Source: Ophelia neglecta (lineage: Eukaryota). From it: DNA of 64,000 nt. The position numbers and the translations under genes are program-made. The notes under the pieces were generated by a model. It saw only the letters and a program-made list of their open reading frames with translations, made no database searches and was not told the DNA's origin. Shown one piece after another: positions 1 through 14,800 of the stretch. Each line of letters opens with the position of its first letter. Position 1 is the first letter of the stretch. Location: positions 12,896,001 to 12,960,000 of the forward strand of contig OZ260666.1 of assembly GCA_965285935.1 (NCBI GenBank). Direction: 5' to 3'.

Positions 1-3000
1 TGTAGTTGCAGAGCTCAAATACATGACGTCACACCCAGGAGCTATAGGTTATTAAGTTGCCCAAGGGTACAAAAAGCGGAACATATATAGCATGAACAAT
101 TGTTTGTGCAGAGGTTCCAAATGAGTTGAAGGTTTTTGTTTTAATCTTTACGTTTAGCTAAGCTCAACTGTGCGTGGTTTTCTATGGAAAAAGAAGATTC
201 TTATGACATTTTTCTTTTAATAGCGGCCTCCGGTATATTGCTAGTATTTACCGTTTTTTTTATGGGTTAACCTTTGTTGCTTAATCCAGTCTTACACCAA
301 ATACCATATTATTGCCGACGAAATGTCTTGCTTAAAATGCACCTTAACAACGCGTTGGTAATTATTTCAAATTATATTGACGGCTGTTTGTCGATGAATG
401 ATCATATCGGCGAAAAGCGACAACGACAAATTGGTTCTAGCGAAGAGTCACTATCCCGTCTTACACACAGTAAGCATGCTAACCACGTATATTAAATGGC
501 GTCCATTTTGATGATATTTAAAGCAGGCCCATAATTTCCATATTTATTTGATAAACATGTTAATAGATAAATTAGTTTTGTGATGATGCAAAGCTAAAAA
601 AAAACAATTTATCGGTATGGGAAAAGCACATTCAGATCTGATTTGAAAATTGTACTAATTATATAACACTGATGGTAGACCGATGGACATTACTTTTTTT
701 GTATGCCTGGTATTGATGCCCCATTTGTCCCCATTAAAGCTTATTGGCACCTAACGAAGTCACTGTTAAAGATCACCAACGGACAAAGTAACCAATTGCC
801 TGAAAGCTGCATACGTATGAATTGAGAGGTCTGCGTTCAACTTTCAAACTATATCAAACAAGATGGCTGCTAAAAAAAATACCGTCAGGGAAGCCAATTT
901 CCGAGAGACTAATAAAAAATTCCTTTTGGCAGTGTTGTCGCAATTTCACAGACTTACAAAGGCATCCTCACCTTCAATAATTTTGCCTTTTACCTTACAA
1001 ACCAAGGTAACTTGTGATTTTATAATTAATACACACGGCGACACATATATTCACTCTTGAAGTATAAAACCCATGTTCAAGCTGGAACCATTAGATAATC
1101 GGCAAGGTATAGGGTGGTGAATATTTTTGAAGAAAAATAACTGTGTCTGTCATATATTTGAAGAACAGCGATATTCCAAACTTTGGGGACAAGTTTTTGT
1201 TTGGATCGAAGATAATGACGAGAATTTTGTGTTCCTCCTCTTTTGATTGTCGAGATCTTTACTTGTGCTAAATGTATGGACCACTAGTCGGAAATCATAT
1301 ACAGGGAATCGAGTGCAGCCCTTCAATTTGACCCTGGGTCTCATTCTAAAGGTCAAATTAAAATGGTTGATAGCCTCAATCCTTAATAGTACAGGACAGA
1401 TATATCAAATGTATTGTACACTATTAGCAAATCAAGGAATGCAGTGTTTAGGTTGAATTTGACCTTAGAACCTCTTGATTGCTATAATGTTCTTCTCATG
1501 GTTTATGCGATAAGTATAAAGGGTGAGACGTTATGAAAGTTAAGATCACTTAATCTCATCTGAAAGTTTGACCTTTCTTCTTTTATATGCATTAATGTAT
1601 AATCATGTTCACAGCCTGTGGGCACCTAAATTACAACTTTAACATTTTCGTGTCAAATGTCTCCAGCACCGAATAAAGAGTTCCCATACAACTCACCTCT
1701 TTCTTGATATACTTTTGACCGACTGAACAGGAGCGTCTACCCCCTAAAACCCGGTTACGTTTGCTTGAAAGTTAATACTGCCCCGCTTGCTGCCCCTTCC
1801 AAAGTATCCGTTTGGCGTCGATCGTCGAGTACGCGGAGTTGAGTAGGGTCGTAATTGAGTTATAATTAGTTTTCATACACAAAAGTATGTAGCGACAAAC
1901 TACAAAATAACTAAACAAAGTTTTCATATTAAATCTGAGAAACAAAGCGAGGGTAAACTTTTTATCTACGCCTGACCGCCATCGCTCAACCGAGCCTAAA
2001 TGTCGTGGTAACGGGAATGAGTAACAGAGAGTGTGGATTAATAGTAGAACTATGGTAAACCCAGACCTAACACTGCTTAAGGCCGGCTTCTGCCAAATCT
2101 GGCTGAGCTGACAGTAGACACCGATGCCATAACCTGACCACGATGGAAGGAAATATCCTAGCTGTTTAAAAACAACTCTCTTGGGTTTGGGAAGTGTTAT
2201 ATTCAGTCGTTAAAGAAGGGATCATCAAAGTAGCTAAAGTACACCTCTTCTAACTTAGCAATAACATTAAACTTTGTCATTTAACTATTGTAATGAAATT
2301 AAATGGGATTTAAGGAATCACTGAAAATAATAAAATTAAGCATACCATTCTCTTGGCCCGTTTCGACTGCTCGGAAATATATAAACCAGCCTAACAAAGC
2401 GACCTCTGCAACACGGTGCATTACTGATGTGACGAATCCCATATTTCAATTTCTTGCCTGAAATGTATAAAAGTCGGTTAAGGAAGAAAGTAACTAATCA
2501 TTTTGTATATATCACAGTGTGCGCTTTCCCTATATACGTGTATGTATTATAATTATCACCTCGGACGTGTTTGGTCGCAATTAAAGTGTGACTTAAAGAT
2601 TTCAAATTTAAAAATAAAATCATCTCAAATTACGAAAAAGATTCGTTCATCATTGATGATGATTGATTTACCTACTTGTTTTTTCGATCTTATTGGTTCA
2701 TGTGACAACTGTTGCCTACTTCTTATTGCAAGTGATATCAATTCAAATTTATAATAACTACATACAACTACTTGTCGCATCTACACGCGACAATTTCTCT
2801 TTGGTCAACAAAATTCAAAACTGCTTTGTACCAATTAAAGTACGAACTGGATGAAGGCACTTATATCGATCTGCCTGTCGTTACACCTGTGTAACTGCTT
2901 CCTTGCCGACTGGTATGACTGTTGTATGACAGGTTACTAGGTTTGTGTCAGGTTTCATACGAGTGAAAATAATTTCAGGTAATAATTATGCTAATATTGC

Positions 3001-6000
3001 ACCAGTTTTATCTGTTTCTATTTTTTATTTGATGCCTTTTACCACGACCCATAACACTACGACTCTCGGTCTGTGTTTGACGACTTGTCGAATCCTAGCC
3101 GTAGTCAGGTAGTATTGACGCGACAGCTCGTGACCTAATGCTTTAATATTGGTGAACTGTAGTTCTAAAGCTGTAGTTCGGAATTTGATTTCCAATTCTT
3201 TTCTCGAAGTTTAGGTATGAGCTCTTCATTCTAACATCTTTTACTTCAAGGCAAATTGATGAAAATTGATAAAACAAGAAATGGTTGTAACCATCTAAGC
3301 CATCGATGCACAGGATCTATTTGTTGTTGGTGGCGTGCTTGGGAATGGGATGGTTTTGGGGAAAAATTTTAACCAACTTTCTTCTTCAACTCAAGTAACA
3401 AAGTTTTTTAATCGACCATGATAGCGATTCAGCAAAATGTATTAATCGTGCGAGGATGAAGAGCCTATGCCTTGCTGTGAATTGAATCATTTTGAGATAA
3501 AATCTGAATATATTCTGTTAACATGGTAACTAATCTATAAACTGACACATATTTTAGGTACTCTAACTTCCTTAATATGGCAGATTGACAGCTGCTATGT
3601 CAATCTTGAAAAAGAAAATATACATATTGGACCAAGGACCGGTCCTTGGACACCGGTCTCACTTACCAAAATGTAACAAATAGATGTACAAATATCAAAG
3701 GCCGCTGCTGCTTGTGCATTACAAGAAGTAGCCCTTGCCCTATAATATTTCTATCAGCAGGCTGTTACTCGAGTGCAAAAATTAGCTGTACAATACTAAC
3801 AGGTGAGTCTTACAGAGTATCGGTTCAAATATAATGATATAAAACAAGTTGGACAACGAGGAAAATTCATAGGCAATTTGTGAACAAATCTCATATTGCT
3901 AGGACAGTAATCGAAAAAACAAATAACAACTAATTCAATAAAAAAAAAACTAAAAAAGGTTTCTAGGGCACTGTAAATTGTTACCTGGAGTCCACCGCTT
4001 CTACTGACAGGTGCAATATGGATGGTAACATTGCATTCTCGATTAATGATTTTGAATTCTTGCGGGTCGATCTTATATACCTTTCCTCCTGTTACAGGTT
4101 TATTGAAACGGCAAATCGAAACCTAAGGGTCAGATGTGGTCGCCCCCCCCCCCCCAAAAAAAAACAAACAAACAATTTTTCCCCGCAGTTTGTGAATGAA
4201 TCATCCTATTGCAGAAATATCTTTCGTTGAAGTATTTCAATGGGTGTTCCGTTCAAGCTAATTGTCTTCACCTTCAAATTAATTTCGCTGGGATCTACAT
4301 ATCTACCAGTTTGCACTTTGTCCAAATACGACTTTGACGTATCACTCCCAATGTTAAAAAAATGTCATAATCATGTTCTACTTTCTTTGGTTTGAATTTA
4401 TGGGAGAGTAATAAGAAATGATGGTTTTACCTTGACTCTATTGAAGATTATCCCAATTCTTGAGGATGAATATAGTTTGGTTATATATGGATAGTATCCT
4501 AATGTTTGAATATACATGCGTGCCATTTGAAGGCATGCACTGTTATGTCAGAATAGGATTTGAAAGGGCAACATCAAACTTACATTTGTAAACATTGTCA
4601 TACTTATAGTTGTTCATGCGTTCAAAGTCCCAAATCTGACGTCTAAGTATGCTCTCGAAAGTAGAGCAGTTTATGCGTTCAAAGTCCCATATAATAATAA
4701 AACTGACTGCTATAAGTACGGGGATATTTAATACCTGAATACTCCATTGATATTTAAATTATATTTGCTATACATTTGAGAATTATTGCCTGTATAATTT
4801 TATAATATAAGTTTTAGCATTGTATGCTCTATTTGAAACTTAAATTGACATTCAAATATGTTGGTCCCACTCATTTTCCCACAGCATATTTAATTTATCT
4901 ATACCTATCTATTTTGAGACTGTCAGCAATAATGTTTTCCTTTTCAAATTAAGATGTAATTAATATGAACGTATATGAACCATATTTCATGGTTTTCAAC
5001 AAATTAGAACACATTTATCCCTAACCAAAATACCATTCCACTTGGTTACATGATGATAGCCATGAAGCCTATGGGGGGGGGGAAATTTGGGCGATTTAGG
5101 CAAATACAAGACCTAACCTCTTCTCACAAAATGCCTTTATGAATATATATGCACTTGAGAGCAAAAATCCAATCCTCTTATATGAAGACCACGCTGTACT
5201 AGTTGAACTAACCAGCTTTTACTAGTTCTTGTATATAACATATTTAGTTATAATATATTAAATTATTACCCTCTGTTCGCTGTGATTAAAACAAAAGCTT
5301 TTTTTAGCACATCTTATCTATGATTTTGTACATTAAGGCCTGCAGTCCAGACTCAGGTTAAAGTGATAAGTCATTCCCTTAATACTGTGTTCTAGTCAAT
5401 AGCTAACCTTTCTAAAACTTGTTTGACCTGGCTAGTTATTGAAAAGGGGGAACTGCATAAAATGTGCTCAGACTGGAATAGTTACTTAATTAGCTATATT
5501 CTTCAGTAACTCTAGGCAAGCACATCGGTGGTCTACTTTAGAATTCAGTGACAGAAACAACTCTGTCAAGGTGTCATGAATTCTCCCATAGAAAGGTCTC
5601 CGCCTACCAACCTAGACAATTCTTTGACATAATTCCCTCACCTTCGTTATTTCTCTTCAACTTGATTCGAGATTCACTTAGAAAATTAAATGCAGAGGAA
5701 AAGATGTCGGTTATGATTTCAACTGTATGCCTGATGCGATCTCCAATTAGTTACTATTAATATACTGTTACTGTTAATATAGTAAATAGCTAATATTGTT
5801 GCGATATTCACCTTTAGATATGGATGGTCTTGGTTCATAAAAACTAGTTATATAGCTGTTCTGTCTTGGCAACTAGTCTTAGCTGAGGGCACGTTGTGGT
5901 GGCTTATTTCATTTTGGCCAACGATAGTTGAGTTCATCAGAGACATGAAAATAATTGGACGAGACAGATTTCGGGGGCTATAAACAATGATAAGAATTAT

Positions 6001-7714: not shown

Positions 7715-7854
7715 TTAGTGATCAAGTGAATTTATATGGAAGAAACACTGCAGAACAGTTCTAACTCTGGCACACTGGCACGTATATTCAATGGAGGTTA
7801 CGTCAATAACTAGACAAATTGGGCGCCTCTCATTGTGATTTCTTTTACACGGAA
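7715..7854 (-). CDS. Candidate terminal exon: cytoplasmic tail (IPCKRNHNERRPICLVIDVTSIEY...DH*)
   Basis: Acceptor ctatttcag|TT is in phase 1 and gives basic residues right after TM2. An alternative or additional acceptor (atatttaaag|G) exists near 7490, so the 3' end is uncertain. Confidence 0.4.
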
Positions 7855-10800
7855 CTGAAATAGCCAGGCACAGTGAGGAGGAGTTTGTCTGAATAGAAAA
7901 CTCAAATACGCCAATTGGCCATAACATCTGCACGCGCTTCATTTTTTGGCCAGGTTGCATTACAAGATATCTCAGTGACTGCAAACTAATTAGTTTACTG
8001 TCAACTTAAACAATGTGTGTTATTTTCTTAATATCAAGCCGGTTCCCACGTTCACCACTTCCGAAACAGTAGCATAGTGTCACTTTCAGCAATGGCCGGT
8101 TTATGTGCCATTTAATTTGTTGTTGCCCTATTTAAAATGTGTCGTACATTGTGCCGTAATAACTGTGTTGGGTTGAATTTATTATCGACATTTGTCGCCA
8201 TTCACTGTATTTTTTTCGCATTATGCCATAATATGACGATGAATTACGCCCAACAGTAATACTCTAGGTCCATTAAGAGACAATCCCTCTCCGCTTTCAA
8301 ATTTTACGTGAATCAGTTTTGGTAATTTTGCCACCCACTCCACCTTAAAAAAAGGCCATTTCAGATTGCAGAAGTTCCGTTGTCTTCGGGATTAGTTTTT
8401 CGACATAATAAAAGTACCATTAATAGACTATTATCTTCACTTAGACAACTTTAAGCAAAAACTATCACAAAAGTATCAAAGTAACATATCGTTATGTTCA
8501 TAACAGAAATAAATATAGGTTCAAAAGAACACACTTACTTTGATAGGCAACGAGGATTGAGCATAGTACGATGACTGACAGAACACACACTAGTGTGGTA
8601 GTCACCAGTGTCACTTTAGAAGCATTCCACGCATGACCTAGGGGAATATGCATTGGTCCATATCAGTATTAAGAAATTGTACTGTATTTATATCATATGA
8701 CATATCCGAGATTACCTTACACATGTCTCTACAAAATTTCCTGAATGCCTGTGCCAATCAAAATATAGCATAAACTATTTTTGGTGTAAATTTAGTATGT
8801 AAAGCAGATGACTTACCTTTCATCGAATCCTCAGTAGAAAATGACGGAGGTGAAACATGTTTCGGGTGTAATGCGGGTGGTTGAAAGTCTGTGACGATGC
8901 AAAAAGGCACAAGTGTCAATAGTATTCTGATAAGGTACGTAAGCGAAAATAAATCTATTCAGTTGCCTTTCCCTTATCGTTTTGTTGCCATTGACACTTA
9001 ACGAACCTACTTTACATAGATAACTTTTATTTTGCCATTAACAAACTCCCTGAACCATCCTTACTCACCATACATCCTCTGTCGGCCTACTAGCACTGCC
9101 CCAATACACTTTGTACATTGATTTGTATTTATAAATAGTGATTTTTCATAAGAGGGAAATACGAATAGCTTCAGGTGTGACAGGAATACAGGAAAGGTAC
9201 TAATAACAAACGCACTGAAGCATTCTATCCTAAACGCTTACATGTACCCCAAGCATGATATATATAATGGCAACAAATAATATATATAAATAATGGCAAT
9301 TGAAGAAAAGGGACAGGAAATGTTAGATACATTTTTATTTGGAGAATGTATACATTCAGAGAAACAAGACAAACCCGCCCAATCCATGGCTACTTGAATC
9401 AAATGTTTCCAAAAGATGTTTAGGTTTGTTGGTTTACTGGGTGCTACGGGGAAGATCTATACCCACCGATATAAGCACTGTTTTCTGACTGCAGATAAGA
9501 GCCCAATTCCTGTCCACGACACGCGTACTTGCTGATCTTGTTCCTATGCAGTCTTGGAACATCAAAGGTAGACAAAAAAGACGCGTTTACTATTGTTGAC
9601 CCATTTTCGACCCAAATATAAGTCATTTGGGGTCGATGGTCTGCCGGCAGGGAGGTTGACTTAACATCACATTTTAACTTGTATTTTTCTGATTCTATAG
9701 TGGCGGTCGATGGTACTCCTGAAGTAAGAACATTGTTAAACAGAGATACATAATGAGAATATTTTGCCATTGGTGTTTAAGATACAAATTGCTTACTTTT
9801 ATTTTCGATTATAGGCAGAAGTTGTATTTCGTTAGTATACCAATACATACGGAGAACTTACCCCATACAAAAACAGTGTTTTTTTCGTAATAGTTCACTG
9901 CACGACAGACGTACGTTCCGGCGTCCTTTAAGGTAACATTTATCAGGGTAATAATGACCAATGACGAATTGCTCCAACTCATTTGGAGACGGCCATCTAA
10001 GGTCTTCTCACCAGTGTGAAACACCTTGTAGTTATTTATGTTGAAGTCATGTTTTCCGCTTTTTCCATAGCAGTTGACTTGCTTCCGTTGTCTTCCTTCT
10101 TGGAGATTCCAAGTAAGATTGGCGTTACTGCCGGTCGAAACTTTTGTGACGCGATGACCTTGGAATGTATGGGTACGGGAAAATTAACTTGAACTAGGAC
10201 AGGCATATGTGCGTAATTTATGACTGGGAGAAAGTTCTGGTTGGAATGCGCCTGGATTGGCAAAAACCGGCCTTAGACGATTTTTAACCGACTGGGCGAC
10301 AAATGAACGGTTATGTTCTACCCTGTTCCTCTTTTTATGAGGCGACGAGAGCATGAACTCGGGGATGAGGTCTAGCAACTTAAGAGTATAACGCACTATA
10401 ATTCAGTGCCCATTTAAACGAAAATTTGCCCAGGTCCGTTTTTGATTGGAGATTCATACTAAGTAAATCTTGCAGCATAACACGAATAGGCGTCCACTGA
10501 TCACTTACCGGATATATCACCAGGATATACATCGGACGAGGTGGTAATCGTTGGCTTATAAGCTGTAATCCCTGTAAAGAAACGAAAACAACCTTTCATA
10601 TAAGGGCATTTTGATGCATAAAATGTTTATCAATCATTTTTCTGTATGGAATCCGGTCTTTGAAGCAATAAAATAATGGCTTTTATTGTTGGAATGAGTT
10701 TTTTACATTTTAAACACTGAAGCAATTACCATTATAATTAGTGAAAAGGGATAGAAACTTTAAACCAAGGGGAGAAAATAGGTGAAACCTAATCTAAATT

Positions 10801-11863
10801 AAGTTCAAGGCTTCGGTCAATGATTAAAGCCTAATTAAATGCTTGAGTTCAAATGCCGGCCAGCATGACATGGCAATAGTTGACAGAAATAATGTTTAAA
10901 TTTATAAAAGTTACATGGAAGGAAATATCGTAAAGATTTACCTCTCTGCGTGGTTGGCGCACTGTTTACAATTGTTGATTGCGAAGTTGTCCCAATTTCA
11001 GCTGTCTCAAAATTATCAAATTTTCCTGAAATTACAGGTGTGTAAGTCCAAAAAAGCGTGGAGCATGTGACATACAAATAATCCAGTAAGATCTTAGGTC
11101 AACATCTGCGTACCAAACATATCAATTATTTACTTCAATGTCATATACATAACTGCAATAGGTTTTTCGATAGATATGACATATTTCTGATTAATTGCAC
11201 TGTTAACCTACCTGACTGCATGCCAAACTGCCACAGTATTCCCAATATACCTATAATTGAAATTGTGGTCAACGCCGATGTTGCTATGTAACCTATGATT
11301 CTCCAATTGACACGTCTTTTTCCAAGTCGACGTTTGATGAGCTGCTGGTAGATATTTTTGCCTCCTGTCAATTCAAACTCAATGCGTACTCGCTCCTCGC
11401 TGGATGTTCTTGATGGATATTCATAACCTTGTTCGTTATTCGGTTCGTCATTACAATCACTGCTGGCTTGGTCGAAATTAGGGAGGATGGCAGAATCGGG
11501 TATCTCAGAGTATGAATGGTAGTCGTCAGAGCTGGAAGTCTCGTCGGTCGATTCGCCTACTTCCGGTATGACATCAGTGGTGGTAACTTTATCAGAAGAC
11601 TCCATAACACTTGGTGGAAGTTTTTGCGACAGATTGGTGATAACCCTGATTTGTGTCTTTGGTCTGGCACCCTGGTATCCGGCAAAGGAGTGCGGATGTT
11701 CTTTTGGCAAGTTTCCGGGCACGGTATTGTCATTCAGGCAATTAACGCTAGTGTCTATGGGTCCATCATCCGCGTCACTAGATACAGCTTTAATAGATAC
11801 TTTGCCTCCGGCATAAGAAACCTCGTGCTCGTTGTCATGTTTGATGTGATCGGTATGTTCCAT
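7715..11863 (-). CDS. Multi-exon gene: Ig-superfamily membrane receptor with two Ig domains between two TM segments. Exons 11863-11212, 11025-10942, 10571-10509, 10158-9862, 9718-9467, 8888-8817, 8637-8539, and tentatively 7854-7715 (552 aa)
   Basis: Each internal exon has a pyrimidine-rich AG acceptor and a GT donor. All junctions are phase 1, the internal exon lengths are multiples of 3 (84, 63, 297, 252, 72, 99), and the spliced frame has no stops. Ig motifs and two hydrophobic segments fall in a coherent order. The last exon is uncertain. Confidence 0.85.
8539..8637 (-). CDS. Exon 7: TM2 (GHAWNASKVTLVTTTLVCVLSVIVLCSILVAYQ)
   Basis: Acceptor attcccctag|GT, donor AA|GTAAGT, 99 nt, ~23-residue hydrophobic run. 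Confidence 0.82.
8817..8888 (-). CDS. Exon 6: Pro/Ser-rich juxtamembrane stalk (DFQPPALHPKHVSPPSFSTEDSMK)
   Basis: Acceptor cctttttgcatcgtcacag|AC, donor AAG|GTAAGT, 72 nt, phase 1-1. Confidence 0.8.
9467..9718 (-). CDS. Exon 5: second Ig (I/C2-like) domain (GVP...LKCDVKSTSLPADHRPQMTYIW...YACRGQELGS...SENSAYI)
   Basis: Acceptor ttcttacttcag|GA, donor G|GTGGGT, 252 nt; LxC...YxW...YxC Ig core. Confidence 0.88.
9862..10158 (-). CDS. Exon 4: atypical V-set-like Ig domain (GHRVTKVSTGSNANLTWNLQEGRQRKQVNCY...ITLINVTLKDAGTYVCRAVNYYEKNTVFVW)
   Basis: Acceptor catacattccaag|GT, donor GG|GTAAGT, 297 nt. Contains the canonical Ig E-F motif ITLxNVxxxDAGTYxC, a D-strand GR and N-glycosylation sequons NLT, NSS, NVT. 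Confidence 0.9.
10509..10571 (-). CDS. Exon 3: S/T/P stalk (GITAYKPTITTSSDVYPGDIS)
   Basis: Acceptor ttttcgtttctttacag|GG, donor CG|GTAAGT, 63 nt, phase 1-1. Not present in the ORF track. Confidence 0.8.
10942..11025 (-). CDS. Exon 2: S/T-rich stalk (GKFDNFETAEIGTTSQSTIVNSAPTTQR)
   Basis: Acceptor gtaatttcag|GA, donor AG|GTAAAT, 84 nt, phase 1-1. Confidence 0.8.
11212..11863 (-). CDS. Exon 1: acidic/Ser-rich cytoplasmic head with Tyr motifs (YSEI, YEYP, IYQQL), basic cluster KRRLGKRR and TM1 (IIGYIATSALTTISIIGILGILW)
   Basis: Longest ORF in the window (11141..11863); donor TCAG|GTAGGT at 11212/11211; the basic residues before the TM indicate an N-in signal anchor. Confidence 0.85.
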
Positions 11864-14800
11864 CCCGACAGAAGCGGCTAACTTCGGACAATTGGCCTAA
11901 TCATGATTACTGTATTTAGGGTCCGGCACGATCGCCATCTGACTCCTTGGTACATTGGGGAAAGTCAAATAGTCTTTTCTTGAACATCAAGACTCTTCAA
12001 TCATAATCGCTGGGACGTGGCGTCCTTTCTTCCGCTATCACCTTTTGCTCAAAAACATTCGTAACACTTTTTGTAGGAAAAGGTCCACTGTCAACGATGA
12101 CTTAAGGAGAAATGGAATTATCGCAACTATCGAGTGCTGATATATCCATAAAATGTATCATCAGACTGACTAGTGTTATCTGTCCGCATAAGGAAATTTG
12201 CATGACGTTGAATGATCTTGTAATTTGGTACAAATAATGATGTATATAAACAATAAATGACGTTTTTATGGATATTAATTATATCAATTATTCCGCGCAG
12301 CAGACAATAATTGTAGGTCGGTATCTTGATATCGTGACCTAGGAAGTTATTTTCATATCCTACTGTCAAAACCCTTTGTAAAAAACGGGAGTGGGTATCG
12401 GGCAGAGAAAGCCAAATCATCAATCAGGAACCAGCAGCCAAATACGTAAGGTCAACCAAATCTAAATACACTTATATCAATTTTATTCATGATGATCCCA
12501 CCCCCTATAATCAGTGGCCAGGTGGCTGATACTTGAGGGCGATTGGTACTTTGCCCCCCCCCCTACCCCCTCCTTTTCGTTACCTCCCTCTCCCCACATT
12601 TGTACTCGTATATCTTTCCCAGTAGTTTTCTATATCATCATTTTTGGCTTTAAATAGAAATGTACTGTTTTACCTTGACTTTGATCGTAGTGTACATAAC
12701 AATTTCTTTCTGGCAATGTTAAACTGATATCGCAACAGAAATAACGCGAGCAAAGAGGAATGGTAAAATGACAGAGCTGAAAGGCTATTCGTTTCCACTA
12801 AAGTCTTGGTTATGTATAAATATTAAAATTGTTAAAATATATGTGGACTGCATTCCATTCCTCTGCCATTACACTGGTGGCGTTTTATTGACCCATTACC
12901 TAAACAAAATATCTGTTCTTAAGTACGTACAAAAGGGAGGCAGATTATCGACGCGCGATCGGTTTTGACCTACTTCCCGCATTTCTTTATCCGGAAAGTA
13001 TAATGGTGACTTTTTAACTCCTGTACAATGTATACAGAAATTTTACACAGACATGTAGGAATCATGTGTCTAATGAAAAGAAAGTGCTGTATAATTACCA
13101 ATTTATAAAAAGAAATTTAATAAACAAACAGGGAAATTGTTTCCGACGAGAAGTCTTAGCAAGGTCAAACTATGCAGATCTTGGTTTTGAAATAAGTGCG
13201 AAGCCCACCGACCAACATAGAGCTGAGGTAGTCATGGTGAAGCGGGAGGGTGGGTCAAAGACAGAGTAAAACATACTAAGAATACTCCATATGCTCTTCA
13301 TCAGCACGGTTGCCTCATCTTGCGTATGTACGAGGTAGGTTGACTAGCTCCAGGGGTTGTTTTTGATACTATTGCCATGAGTTTTGGGTTATTCTTATTT
13401 TCGATGTGTAGCCAGTCAAATGTCTTTCATTGAAGAATGCCCCAGTTGTGTTTCTAGTCTGTGTTATAATCAATTAACTAACTGCTGACCACGGTCTACT
13501 TTCGTCTGCTGCAAGATTTTGGTTAAATTTGCTATCGCGCGACCTTAAAATCACAATAAGTCCTTAGCGAACATGTTTAATTTTCATTATCGATTTGAAC
13601 TTTTTCGATCTATGAATGCAATGCTCTCATCTTACACGTGTCTCTCTTGTGACAGTTAATAGGTGAAAACTGGGCTAGCATATTTACAGGCACCACACAA
13701 TGTACCCTAATCGGCTACTTCAGACTTTTACCTGCACCGAATTGTGGCCGCCAATCAATTATACAAATAAAATATATATGCAAAGCTTTCAGTGATAGGT
13801 TTACTCCTTATTTTAAGGTTTTGATATTTTTAAAATTTGGATGAGACAAGTAAAATGTTCTCTTGAATTGTCATATATAGAAATATAAGACAACTCATGT
13901 TTTGCGGAATCTGTTCATTAAAATTGCTTTTCAAACCCAGGTATAGTCGAACTTAATTTCTTTGCCTACTTTAAGACAATCTCTTTATGTTAGTACAATA
14001 CAATATAACTTGCTTTTATTAAACAAGTAACTTATACAAACTATAGATGGTATATTGTATAAATATACATGTAGCCGAGGTGCGAAAGGCCTAAAGGAGA
14101 TTTATTATGAACCTGAGGTATATACGGCTAAAATGAGGGTCATTACCAAGCTAATGACGCCGGCTTAAGCCGGTTTTCAATAAAAGTTTTTGTGCCGTAT
14201 CCAGTGTTACCTAGAATATTTATTAATTAGTTAAATAATCACAATTTTCAATTTTGTGGCTATACATTTTGAAAGAAGTCAGATGTAGAAGATTTTTAAA
14301 CTGAAGAAGTAAGAGTAAACAAATATCTTACGTTAAGAAAATAATTTTGATATCAGTAGCCATGGTTACCATAGGATAAGGGCAAATGCGAATTTATGAC
14401 ATCTTAACCTTTTTTTTCAGATTTGATATACGGTTGTTATCAGTTATTTGATCAAAAAGCCCATATCTCGTGATTCTTATGGTAATCTCACTACCCATTT
14501 ATGAGTTAGGTCCGGAGCTTTAGACTTTTCAAAATGCAACGTCCGTTAAGAAAGGGATAAATTGGTTTACGTTATATATTAACTAGGCTAAGAACATTCA
14601 GATGACCCCCTCAATAGGTCTGTGTAATACATGAACCAAGGCCCGGATGTTTTTTTTATTCCGTGATGCCCAACCCCCTCAATTCACCTGTTACTAATGT
14701 TCCCAGGTGTACGGAGTCATGGTGGTAACCGTTCACAAACAAAGTTTTCGACCGCAGACGTTAAACTTGCCAATGTTATTATGTCATTTGAGACTTGTAT

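Follow-up and report, generated by a model that had tools for sequence, protein, structure and literature searches.

The DNA analysed here is a 64-kb window of the Ophelia neglecta genome (contig OZ260666.1; C9:12,896,001-12,960,000 of a 762-Mb assembly, the whole of which was searched for paralogs), and its minus strand carries, between window positions 11863 and 8539, a seven-exon gene that joins a long tyrosine-containing head to two immunoglobulin (Ig) domains. The favoured reading, which is fairly likely to be correct, is that the product runs from the head through a first transmembrane segment (TM1), the two Ig domains and a second transmembrane segment (TM2), with the Ig domains held in a loop between two membrane anchors. 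The locus belongs to an undescribed, lineage-restricted family of about 25 receptor genes of the immunoglobulin superfamily (IgSF), of which this member is probably functional. IgSF receptors are almost always type I proteins with C-terminal signalling motifs, and the arrangement predicted here reverses the position of the motifs relative to the ectodomain.

The gene model is built on splice borders and an uninterrupted frame. All introns have GT-AG borders (acceptors all AG, donors all GT[A/G]) and lie in phase 1, and the seven exons join into an open frame of 1,519 nt (506 codons), so the junctions that an earlier note on this DNA had drawn between 11863 and 8539 are real AG/GT pairs throughout. 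The open reading frame (ORF) of exon 1, 240 aa up to its read-through stop, is the longest across the 64-kb window. The exons are the following:

11212..11863, minus strand: exon 1, 217 codons + 1 nt, acidic Ser/Thr-rich head, basic cluster and TM1

10942..11025, minus strand: exon 2, Thr/Ser-rich stalk, 28 codons, phase 1-1

10509..10571, minus strand: exon 3, Thr/Ser/Pro stalk, 21 codons, phase 1-1

9862..10158, minus strand: exon 4, V-set Ig domain (Ig1)

9467..9718, minus strand: exon 5, C2-type Ig domain (Ig2)

8817..8888, minus strand: exon 6, membrane-proximal Pro/Ser-rich spacer, 24 codons, phase 1-1

8539..8637, minus strand: exon 7, TM2, with a phase-1 donor (exonic A followed by GTAAGT)

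The donor of exon 1 is likewise in phase 1 (exonic G followed by GTAGGT). Exon 2 is 96-100% identical and free of indels in the close paralogs L021 and L022, and it is not detectable in distant paralogs.

Profile and fold searches, in which the exons were queried one at a time, confirm the two Ig domains that had been proposed from the sequence, and the gene belongs to the IgSF by both profile match and beta-sandwich fold. Specifically, Ig1 matches the Pfam V-set family (E 6e-6; 26.9 bits, with the threshold at 26), a profile built from 12 paralogous Ig1 exons retrieves the polymeric-Ig receptor (pIgR), titin and CEA from the PDB at E-values down to 1e-13, and its AlphaFold2 (AF2) model, with nine strands and a predicted local distance difference test score (pLDDT) of 82.5, is matched by Foldseek to CD4 D1, ZIG-8, CRTAM and nectin-like V domains at TM-scores of 0.7-0.8. 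The Pfam match of Ig2 is weak (E 0.034); its paralog profile retrieves sidekick, contactin and FcgR from the PDB at 1e-4 to 0.02, its AF2 model reaches pLDDT 93.9 with seven strands, and all of its Foldseek matches are C2/I-type Ig domains. The canonical pin of Cys in strand B, Trp in strand C and Cys in strand F is present in Ig2, where the C..W..YxC pattern (C16, W35, Y64-x-C66) is invariant across 10 paralogs, whereas Ig1 departs from it at strands B and C: its family-invariant residues are W16, C29 and C84, with a Trp at the usual position of the B-strand Cys and a Cys placed in strand C. The region between the transmembrane segments is rich in glycosylation sequons, as had been noticed before, and holds six of the seven N-x-S/T sequons of the protein. 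Transmembrane and signal calls here and below are based on Kyte-Doolittle (KD) hydropathy in 19-residue windows and on charge counts. By these measures TM2 spans about aa 481-504 (KD 2.67), and TM2-type exons of phase 1-1 that end in RSR, CPR or RCR and are followed by GTAAGT are present in 12 paralog loci; in the window copy TM2 is followed only by Y-Q, not by basic residues as in the paralogs.

The N-terminal part lacks the cleavable signal peptide of a classical type I IgSF receptor. The first 60 aa reach a peak KD19 of only 0.07 and thus hold no hydrophobic N-terminus, and no ATG-led hydrophobic mini-exon with a phase-1 donor occurs in the interval from exon 1 to Ig1 of this gene or of 9 of 14 paralogs, in agreement with the earlier claim that a signal peptide is missing. 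A weak candidate signal exon at 12853-12799, some 1 kb upstream of exon 1, was judged to be a chance occurrence, its hydrophobic run being short and its donor poor. The joined translation instead opens with the acidic head of about 185 aa that had been described (D+E 32 vs K+R 19), in which three tyrosine motifs precede TM1:

11501..11512, minus strand: YSEI, aa 118-121, with the acidic Ser cluster ETSSSDD just before it

11414..11425, minus strand: YEYP, aa 147-150, family consensus YExP, followed by RTSSEER

11339..11353, minus strand: IYQQL, aa 171-175, family consensus N-I-Y-Q-x-L, 14 residues ahead of TM1

11231..11299, minus strand: TM1, aa 189-211, 23 residues, KD 1.94, with a conserved WQFG end

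The basic cluster KRRLGKRRVNWR stands directly ahead of TM1, and the 15 residues preceding TM1 have a net charge of +7. In alignment A1, which comprises the heads of 10 paralogs at 27-46% identity, the invariant or nearly invariant positions are SSS in the acidic Ser cluster, Tyr, Glu and Ile in Y[S/D]EI, Tyr, Glu and Pro in YExP (columns Y256, E257 and P259, all invariant), the RTSSEER block, N-I-Y-Q-x-L (invariant columns N279, Y281, Q282 and L284), one Arg of the basic cluster and the Trp that ends TM1; the hydrophobic TM1 stretch is kept in all paralogs.

The conserved motifs differ from the common immunoreceptor signatures. They do not form an immunoreceptor tyrosine-based activation motif (ITAM; YxxL/I, 6-12 residues, YxxL/I) because Tyr118 and Tyr172 are 54 residues apart, with YEYP in between, nor a canonical inhibitory motif (ITIM; [S/I/V/L]-x-Y-x-x-[I/V/L]) because position -2 is occupied by His in the case of YSEI and by Asn in the case of YQQL; most paralogs have these same residues, and Ser stands at -2 only in L032. 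A hemITAM, the single-tyrosine form of the motif, has an acidic triplet just upstream and lies in an N-terminal cytoplasmic tail; the stretch SSSDD-Y-H-S-YSEI has upstream acids and a place in an N-terminal head, but these acids are found at -5/-6, and the ectodomain is of Ig and not of C-type lectin type. Y[S/D]EI resembles the ligands of Src-family Src homology 2 (SH2) domains, YxxP resembles those of Crk/Abl-type SH2 domains, and YQxL, with its distance of 14 residues to the membrane, could also be read as a YxxØ signal for sorting (Ø, a bulky hydrophobic residue). The head motifs may serve as SH2 ligands or in sorting, and the head itself is presumably disordered.

The simplest reading of these features is a predicted hairpin with both ends cytoplasmic, as the earlier note had suggested, and it draws on the missing signal peptide, the basic flank of TM1, the sequons and cysteines of the Ig region and the basic flank of TM2 in the paralogs. 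According to the positive-inside rule, basic residues flanking a membrane segment stay on the cytoplasmic side, a long hydrophobic region favours an uncleaved anchor, and both N-glycosylation and the disulfides of Ig domains need the lumen of the endoplasmic reticulum (ER). Because sequons and Cys pairs are conserved across the family, the Ig exons must reach the ER lumen; TM1 is the sole segment able to deliver them, and its strongly basic N-flank argues for insertion with the N-terminus inside. TM1 also looks uncleaved, because it is 23 residues long and has Q at -3 of its WQFG end. The charges agree with a two-TM hairpin at both anchors, with +7 before TM1 and RSR, CPR or RCR after TM2 in the paralogs. 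In the proposed working of the protein, TM1 would insert as a signal anchor with the N-terminus in the cytoplasm and would carry the Thr/Ser stalk, the V-set Ig domain and the C2-type Ig domain across the membrane, and TM2 would then act as a stop-transfer anchor, leaving both ends cytoplasmic and the Ig pair in an extracellular loop. A ligand bound to the Ig loop might alter the clustering of the receptor, whereupon the head tyrosines could be phosphorylated and dock SH2 proteins or sorting adaptors.

The earlier model stands except at its two ends, the start, which is treated below, and the C-terminal exon. TM2 and a short tail had been proposed, and the TM2 exon at 8637-8539 holds, in contrast to the terminal exon that was to encode the tail:

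7715..7854, minus strand: terminal exon of the earlier note, 46 codons, acceptor 7854, stop 7715, giving a 552-aa product; unsupported

This exon lacks support since a 2-nt gap in the close paralog L022 alters its frame and stop, and the 552-aa product is unsupported with it. Moreover, the conservation of 7854-7715 is no higher than that of the flanking non-coding DNA, the segment has no counterpart in distant paralogs, and it has no Pfam match. A further tail exon nevertheless probably exists downstream of the TM2 exon, because the latter has a conserved phase-1 donor; reading through the donor of exon 7 would add 12 residues. The comparison of the window with the paralog L023 is uninformative for the tail because the homology stops at TM1.

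Several observations weigh against the two-anchor reading. The predicted tail exon was not found by tblastx among divergent paralogs, by comparing the peptides of phase-1 candidate terminal exons or by Pfam searches of downstream ORFs; the stalk exons 2, 3 and 6 have their backing in close duplicates only; and the three public runs that contain the region are all DNA from one sample, with short unitigs that span introns and exons, mix paralogs and include no exon-exon joint. Among the window copy, L021 and L022 the ratio of nonsynonymous to synonymous substitution (dN/dS) is 0.7-0.9, a value calculated from few changes and indistinguishable from neutrality, and L023 (C9:13314000-13323500) has a TAG at the first Q of IYQQL, making decay in this subclade possible. 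Finally, tblastn with the paralog heads recovers coding remains upstream of exon 1:

11864..11983, minus strand: remnant of an ancestral longer head (RKDY..VPRSQ), in frame with exon 1

The remnant is interrupted in its frame by a TAG (11899-11897), 11 codons ahead of the ATG at 11863, and a weaker distal remnant, which matches the start MAEGG..FELTE within 11864-12098 of the minus strand, lies in another frame. Most other paralogs start about 100 residues earlier, at MAEGG..FELTE, and have an additional NDGYEVP motif, whereas the TAG of the window copy is common to L021, L022 and L023. The window copy is a short-head variant with a secondary start: about 100 N-terminal residues were lost through an old in-frame stop, and its translation would begin at the Met that follows this stop.

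The interrupted remnants, the stop in exon 1 of L023, the near-neutral ratios and a mosaic pattern of identity would all fit a decaying or non-functional subclade, made up of the window copy, L021, L022 and L023, in which frames stay open through young duplication or gene conversion. This explanation is unlikely, given how the coding sequence has behaved since the stop arose. The window and L023 share the stop at a synonymous divergence (dS) of 0.30, yet exon 1 shows dN/dS 0.35 between them (Fisher p 1e-5) and the motif region with TM1 shows 0.22, which points to purifying selection on the already shortened head, because L023 shares the upstream stop. The window locus, L021 and L022 are segmental duplicates whose alignment continues across introns and flanks at about 91-94% identity; in the coding exons identity is 97.2%, and these exons carry neither indels nor stops over 1,519 coding nt in any of the three copies, with indels present in the introns, and a Met is available 11 codons past the stop.

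It is distinctly unlikely that the mature protein keeps a single anchor, either because signal peptidase cuts TM1, leaving a type I Ig-Ig-TM protein and a head stub, or because the protein is type II, with TM2 skipped or used as a glycosylphosphatidylinositol (GPI) signal. Removal of TM1 would require cleavage at an end (WQFG) without a small residue at -3, which under the -3/-1 rule would be a poor site for signal peptidase, of a segment that is 23 residues long; it would also discard the head as a pro-piece, which is improbable because the head is under purifying selection. A GPI signal would be in keeping with the position of the TM2 exon near the C-terminus and with the small residues N-A-S that precede TM2, but TM2 differs from such a signal, with its 24 residues and with the basic residues and conserved phase-1 donor that come after it in the paralogs.

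The main evidence for the gene model comes from its paralogs. The genome holds 28 exons that resemble exon 1, nearly all at 10-17 Mb of C9, and about 150 matches each for the Ig1 and Ig2 exons, over 150 for the former and over 145 for the latter, mostly at 3-5 Mb and 10-23 Mb of C9. A head-like exon and Ig exons are also present near C9:14.88 Mb. Of the 28 head-like exons, 23 are followed on their own strand by an Ig1-like exon at a distance of 1.1-6.5 kb, an adjacency whose probability by chance was estimated here at about 3% per exon, from a density in the cluster of roughly one Ig1 exon in every 130 kb. The order head-Ig1-Ig2-TM2 is found in paralogs that have only 26-45% identity to the window protein (tblastn, 20 loci), and the donor of exon 1 falls at the same codon position and in the same phase in every modelled paralog, a few residues past WQFG. 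The head/TM1 exon and the Ig/TM2 exons therefore belong together, because their order and strand recur in 23 of 28 cases and in another species, whose contig carries a head followed by an Ig exon; the assignment of all these exons to one gene is thereby strengthened, and the proposed search for relatives with the TM-Ig-Ig-TM order yielded paralogs with the full order. That exon 1 and the Ig/TM2 exons sit in separate transcripts, side by side merely through tandem arrays, is very improbable: the public runs being DNA only, the heads of L029 and L040 without Ig exons within 7 kb, the lone TM2-like exon of L035 and the L023 homology break near TM1, by which head and ectodomain are recombinable, would accommodate it, but 23 of 28 heads have a same-strand Ig1 within 6.5 kb against a chance level of about 3%, phase 1 meets phase 1 at the junction, exon 1 shows a conserved donor but no conserved stop in its frame, the order is repeated in another species, and the Ig exons without exon 1 have neither start nor signal.

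Three head-like exons deviate from the common arrangement. L035 (C7:97971900-97981200), L029 and L040 (C9:12.57 and 12.67 Mb) have no Ig exon within 7 kb, and at L035 there is just a TM2-like exon about 1 kb downstream of a head with an internal repeat (NVTWT.. units). These three loci may be Ig-less two-TM variants or fragments.

The relatives of the head-type genes indicate how the architecture may have arisen. Two related Ig1-Ig2 genes, L019 and L020 (C9 3.51 and 3.97 Mb), have a signal-peptide mini-exon 250-350 bp upstream of Ig1; the two mini-exons are similar to each other, both having about 24 codons that encode a strongly hydrophobic core, followed by a phase-1 donor, and L019 and L020 are type I relatives of the head-type genes. 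In the latter, a head exon of 217-330 codons occupies the position of the signal exon in the same phase. This comparison supports a replacement of the ordinary signal-peptide first exon of type I relatives by a large head exon, and the exon-shuffling idea of the earlier note gains support accordingly from the shared position and phase. TM2 would then probably be the original type I anchor, although the TM exon is too short for its own origin to be traced. The 3-5 Mb region of C9 contains dozens of Ig pairs like those of L019 and L020.

Recombination and duplication have left further traces in the cluster. The promoter and head exon of L023 are 84-87% identical to the window at the nucleotide level, the Ig/TM2 part reaches 51-53% at the amino acid level, and the homology breaks near TM1. 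This break shows that head and ectodomain recombine, and L023 appears to be a recombinant turned pseudogene. Exons 2 and 3 with intron 2 of the window copy are 99-100% identical to L022, and the neighbouring segments are 93-97% identical; such a mosaic suggests recent gene conversion between the duplicates. Within groups of recent duplicates, the dN/dS of Ig1 is 1.16 in L024-27 and 0.17-0.43 in the window group, and diversifying selection on Ig1 is not claimed, since the groups disagree and the pairs are non-independent. A putative retrocopy at L016 (C9:2.997 Mb) was dismissed as well: its 289-aa frame spanning Ig1-Ig2 reflects an open intron and not a processed copy. The same locus (C9:2995827-2999114) contains, at about 2300-3260 and past its Ig1-Ig2 pair, tandem short units that are open in several frames on both strands and encode, for example, repeated ..CGVEGVVGG.., which is probably a minisatellite rather than coding sequence. 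Elsewhere in the window, positions 20000-58000 hold an array of diverged repeat units of about 3.3-3.8 kb, 60-96% identical, with G-rich tracts and a positive GC skew of up to 0.26 on the plus strand; Tandem Repeats Finder (TRF, score 200) reports no repeat there because the period exceeds its limit.

Outside this genome, relatives of the head are scarce. The head has no match in Pfam or in a word search with alignment A1, and no score above 0.81 in the ESM Atlas. A hidden Markov model (HMM) search of 1.84 billion representative proteins returned only two unannotated ORF fragments of heads, 131 and 280 aa long, both from one Logan-assembled run, ERR14113986. Their best match in the present genome is the window gene, at 45% identity, and they therefore come from another species, because the best match here is only 45%. 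The acidic Ser cluster, Y-S-E-I, Y-E-x-P (YERP in fragment P0001, YEHP in fragment P0002) and Y-Q-x-L are retained in the two of them, and on one of their contigs, L041, the head exon is followed about 800 bp downstream, on the same strand, by an Ig1-like exon.

Known receptors share parts of this architecture. In the hemITAM C-type lectin receptors CLEC-2 and Dectin-1, the cytoplasmic tail is N-terminal and its YxxL/I is preceded by an acidic stretch, and receptors of this type have an uncleaved signal anchor in place of a signal peptide and are encoded by clustered multigene families. The likeness of these type II receptors to the head-type genes consists in the N-terminal tyrosine tail and the signal anchor; they differ in having a C-type lectin ectodomain, a single pass with the C-terminus free outside and one hemITAM, whereas the head-type genes have Ig domains, two predicted transmembrane segments and three spaced motifs (YSEI, YExP, YQxL), and there is no sequence similarity between them. 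The hairpin predicted here, with both ends cytoplasmic and an ectodomain formed by one loop, is also that of the CD36/SCARB class B scavenger receptors, P2X and ENaC/ASIC, but their large, glycosylated loops are non-Ig and their short N-termini lack a motif head, so that the likeness is one of predicted topology alone and not of homology. CD4 D1-D2, JAM-A, nectin-like/CRTAM and CEACAM proteins have, as here, a V-set domain followed by a C2-type Ig domain, each in one phase 1-1 exon; they have a cleaved signal peptide and one transmembrane segment, are only 15-21% identical to the window Ig domains and differ from Ig1, whose Cys lies in strand C and not in strand B. A full-text literature search found no IgSF protein with both termini cytoplasmic, although its coverage was partial and this is weak evidence of absence.

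Two allorecognition systems provide a further comparison. The ITAM/ITIM tails of Alr are C-terminal, and fester is not an IgSF protein. The Hydractinia Alr receptors combine a V-set domain with further Ig domains, have non-canonical positions of Cys and Trp in the V-set domain and carry tyrosine signalling motifs, and, like the head-type genes, they form a large, tandem-clustered and lineage-restricted receptor family with pseudogenes (PMC9546547). No sequence relation between these families and the present head is detectable. The genomic setting of Botryllus fester (PMC12582321) may also resemble that of the head-type genes. Polymorphism and a recognition function are shown for Alr and fester.

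The huge, duplicating IgSF cluster invites the guess that the head-type genes have an immune or allorecognition role. A broader and rather doubtful proposal is that they form one arm of a paired-receptor system within a giant IgSF complex (>100 genes on one chromosome) built by first-exon swapping, in which hairpin receptors with N-terminal tyrosines and type I receptors with other cytoplasmic modules would have V-C2 ectodomains in common; such a complex would be a new invertebrate, possibly annelid, system for self/non-self or pathogen recognition and would contain the first IgSF class with both termini cytoplasmic. If the two-anchor reading is correct, it would mean that IgSF ectodomains can be rewired for N-terminal signalling, in a hairpin topology so far linked to scavenger receptors and ion channels, by exchanging the signal peptide for a conserved tyrosine-motif head plus signal anchor, with the original C-terminal anchor retained. 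Because it combines a large duplicating cluster in a little-studied invertebrate lineage with the lack of any annotated relative among 1.84 billion proteins, the family would offer an entry point to lineage-specific receptor repertoires that arise through the swapping of exon 1.

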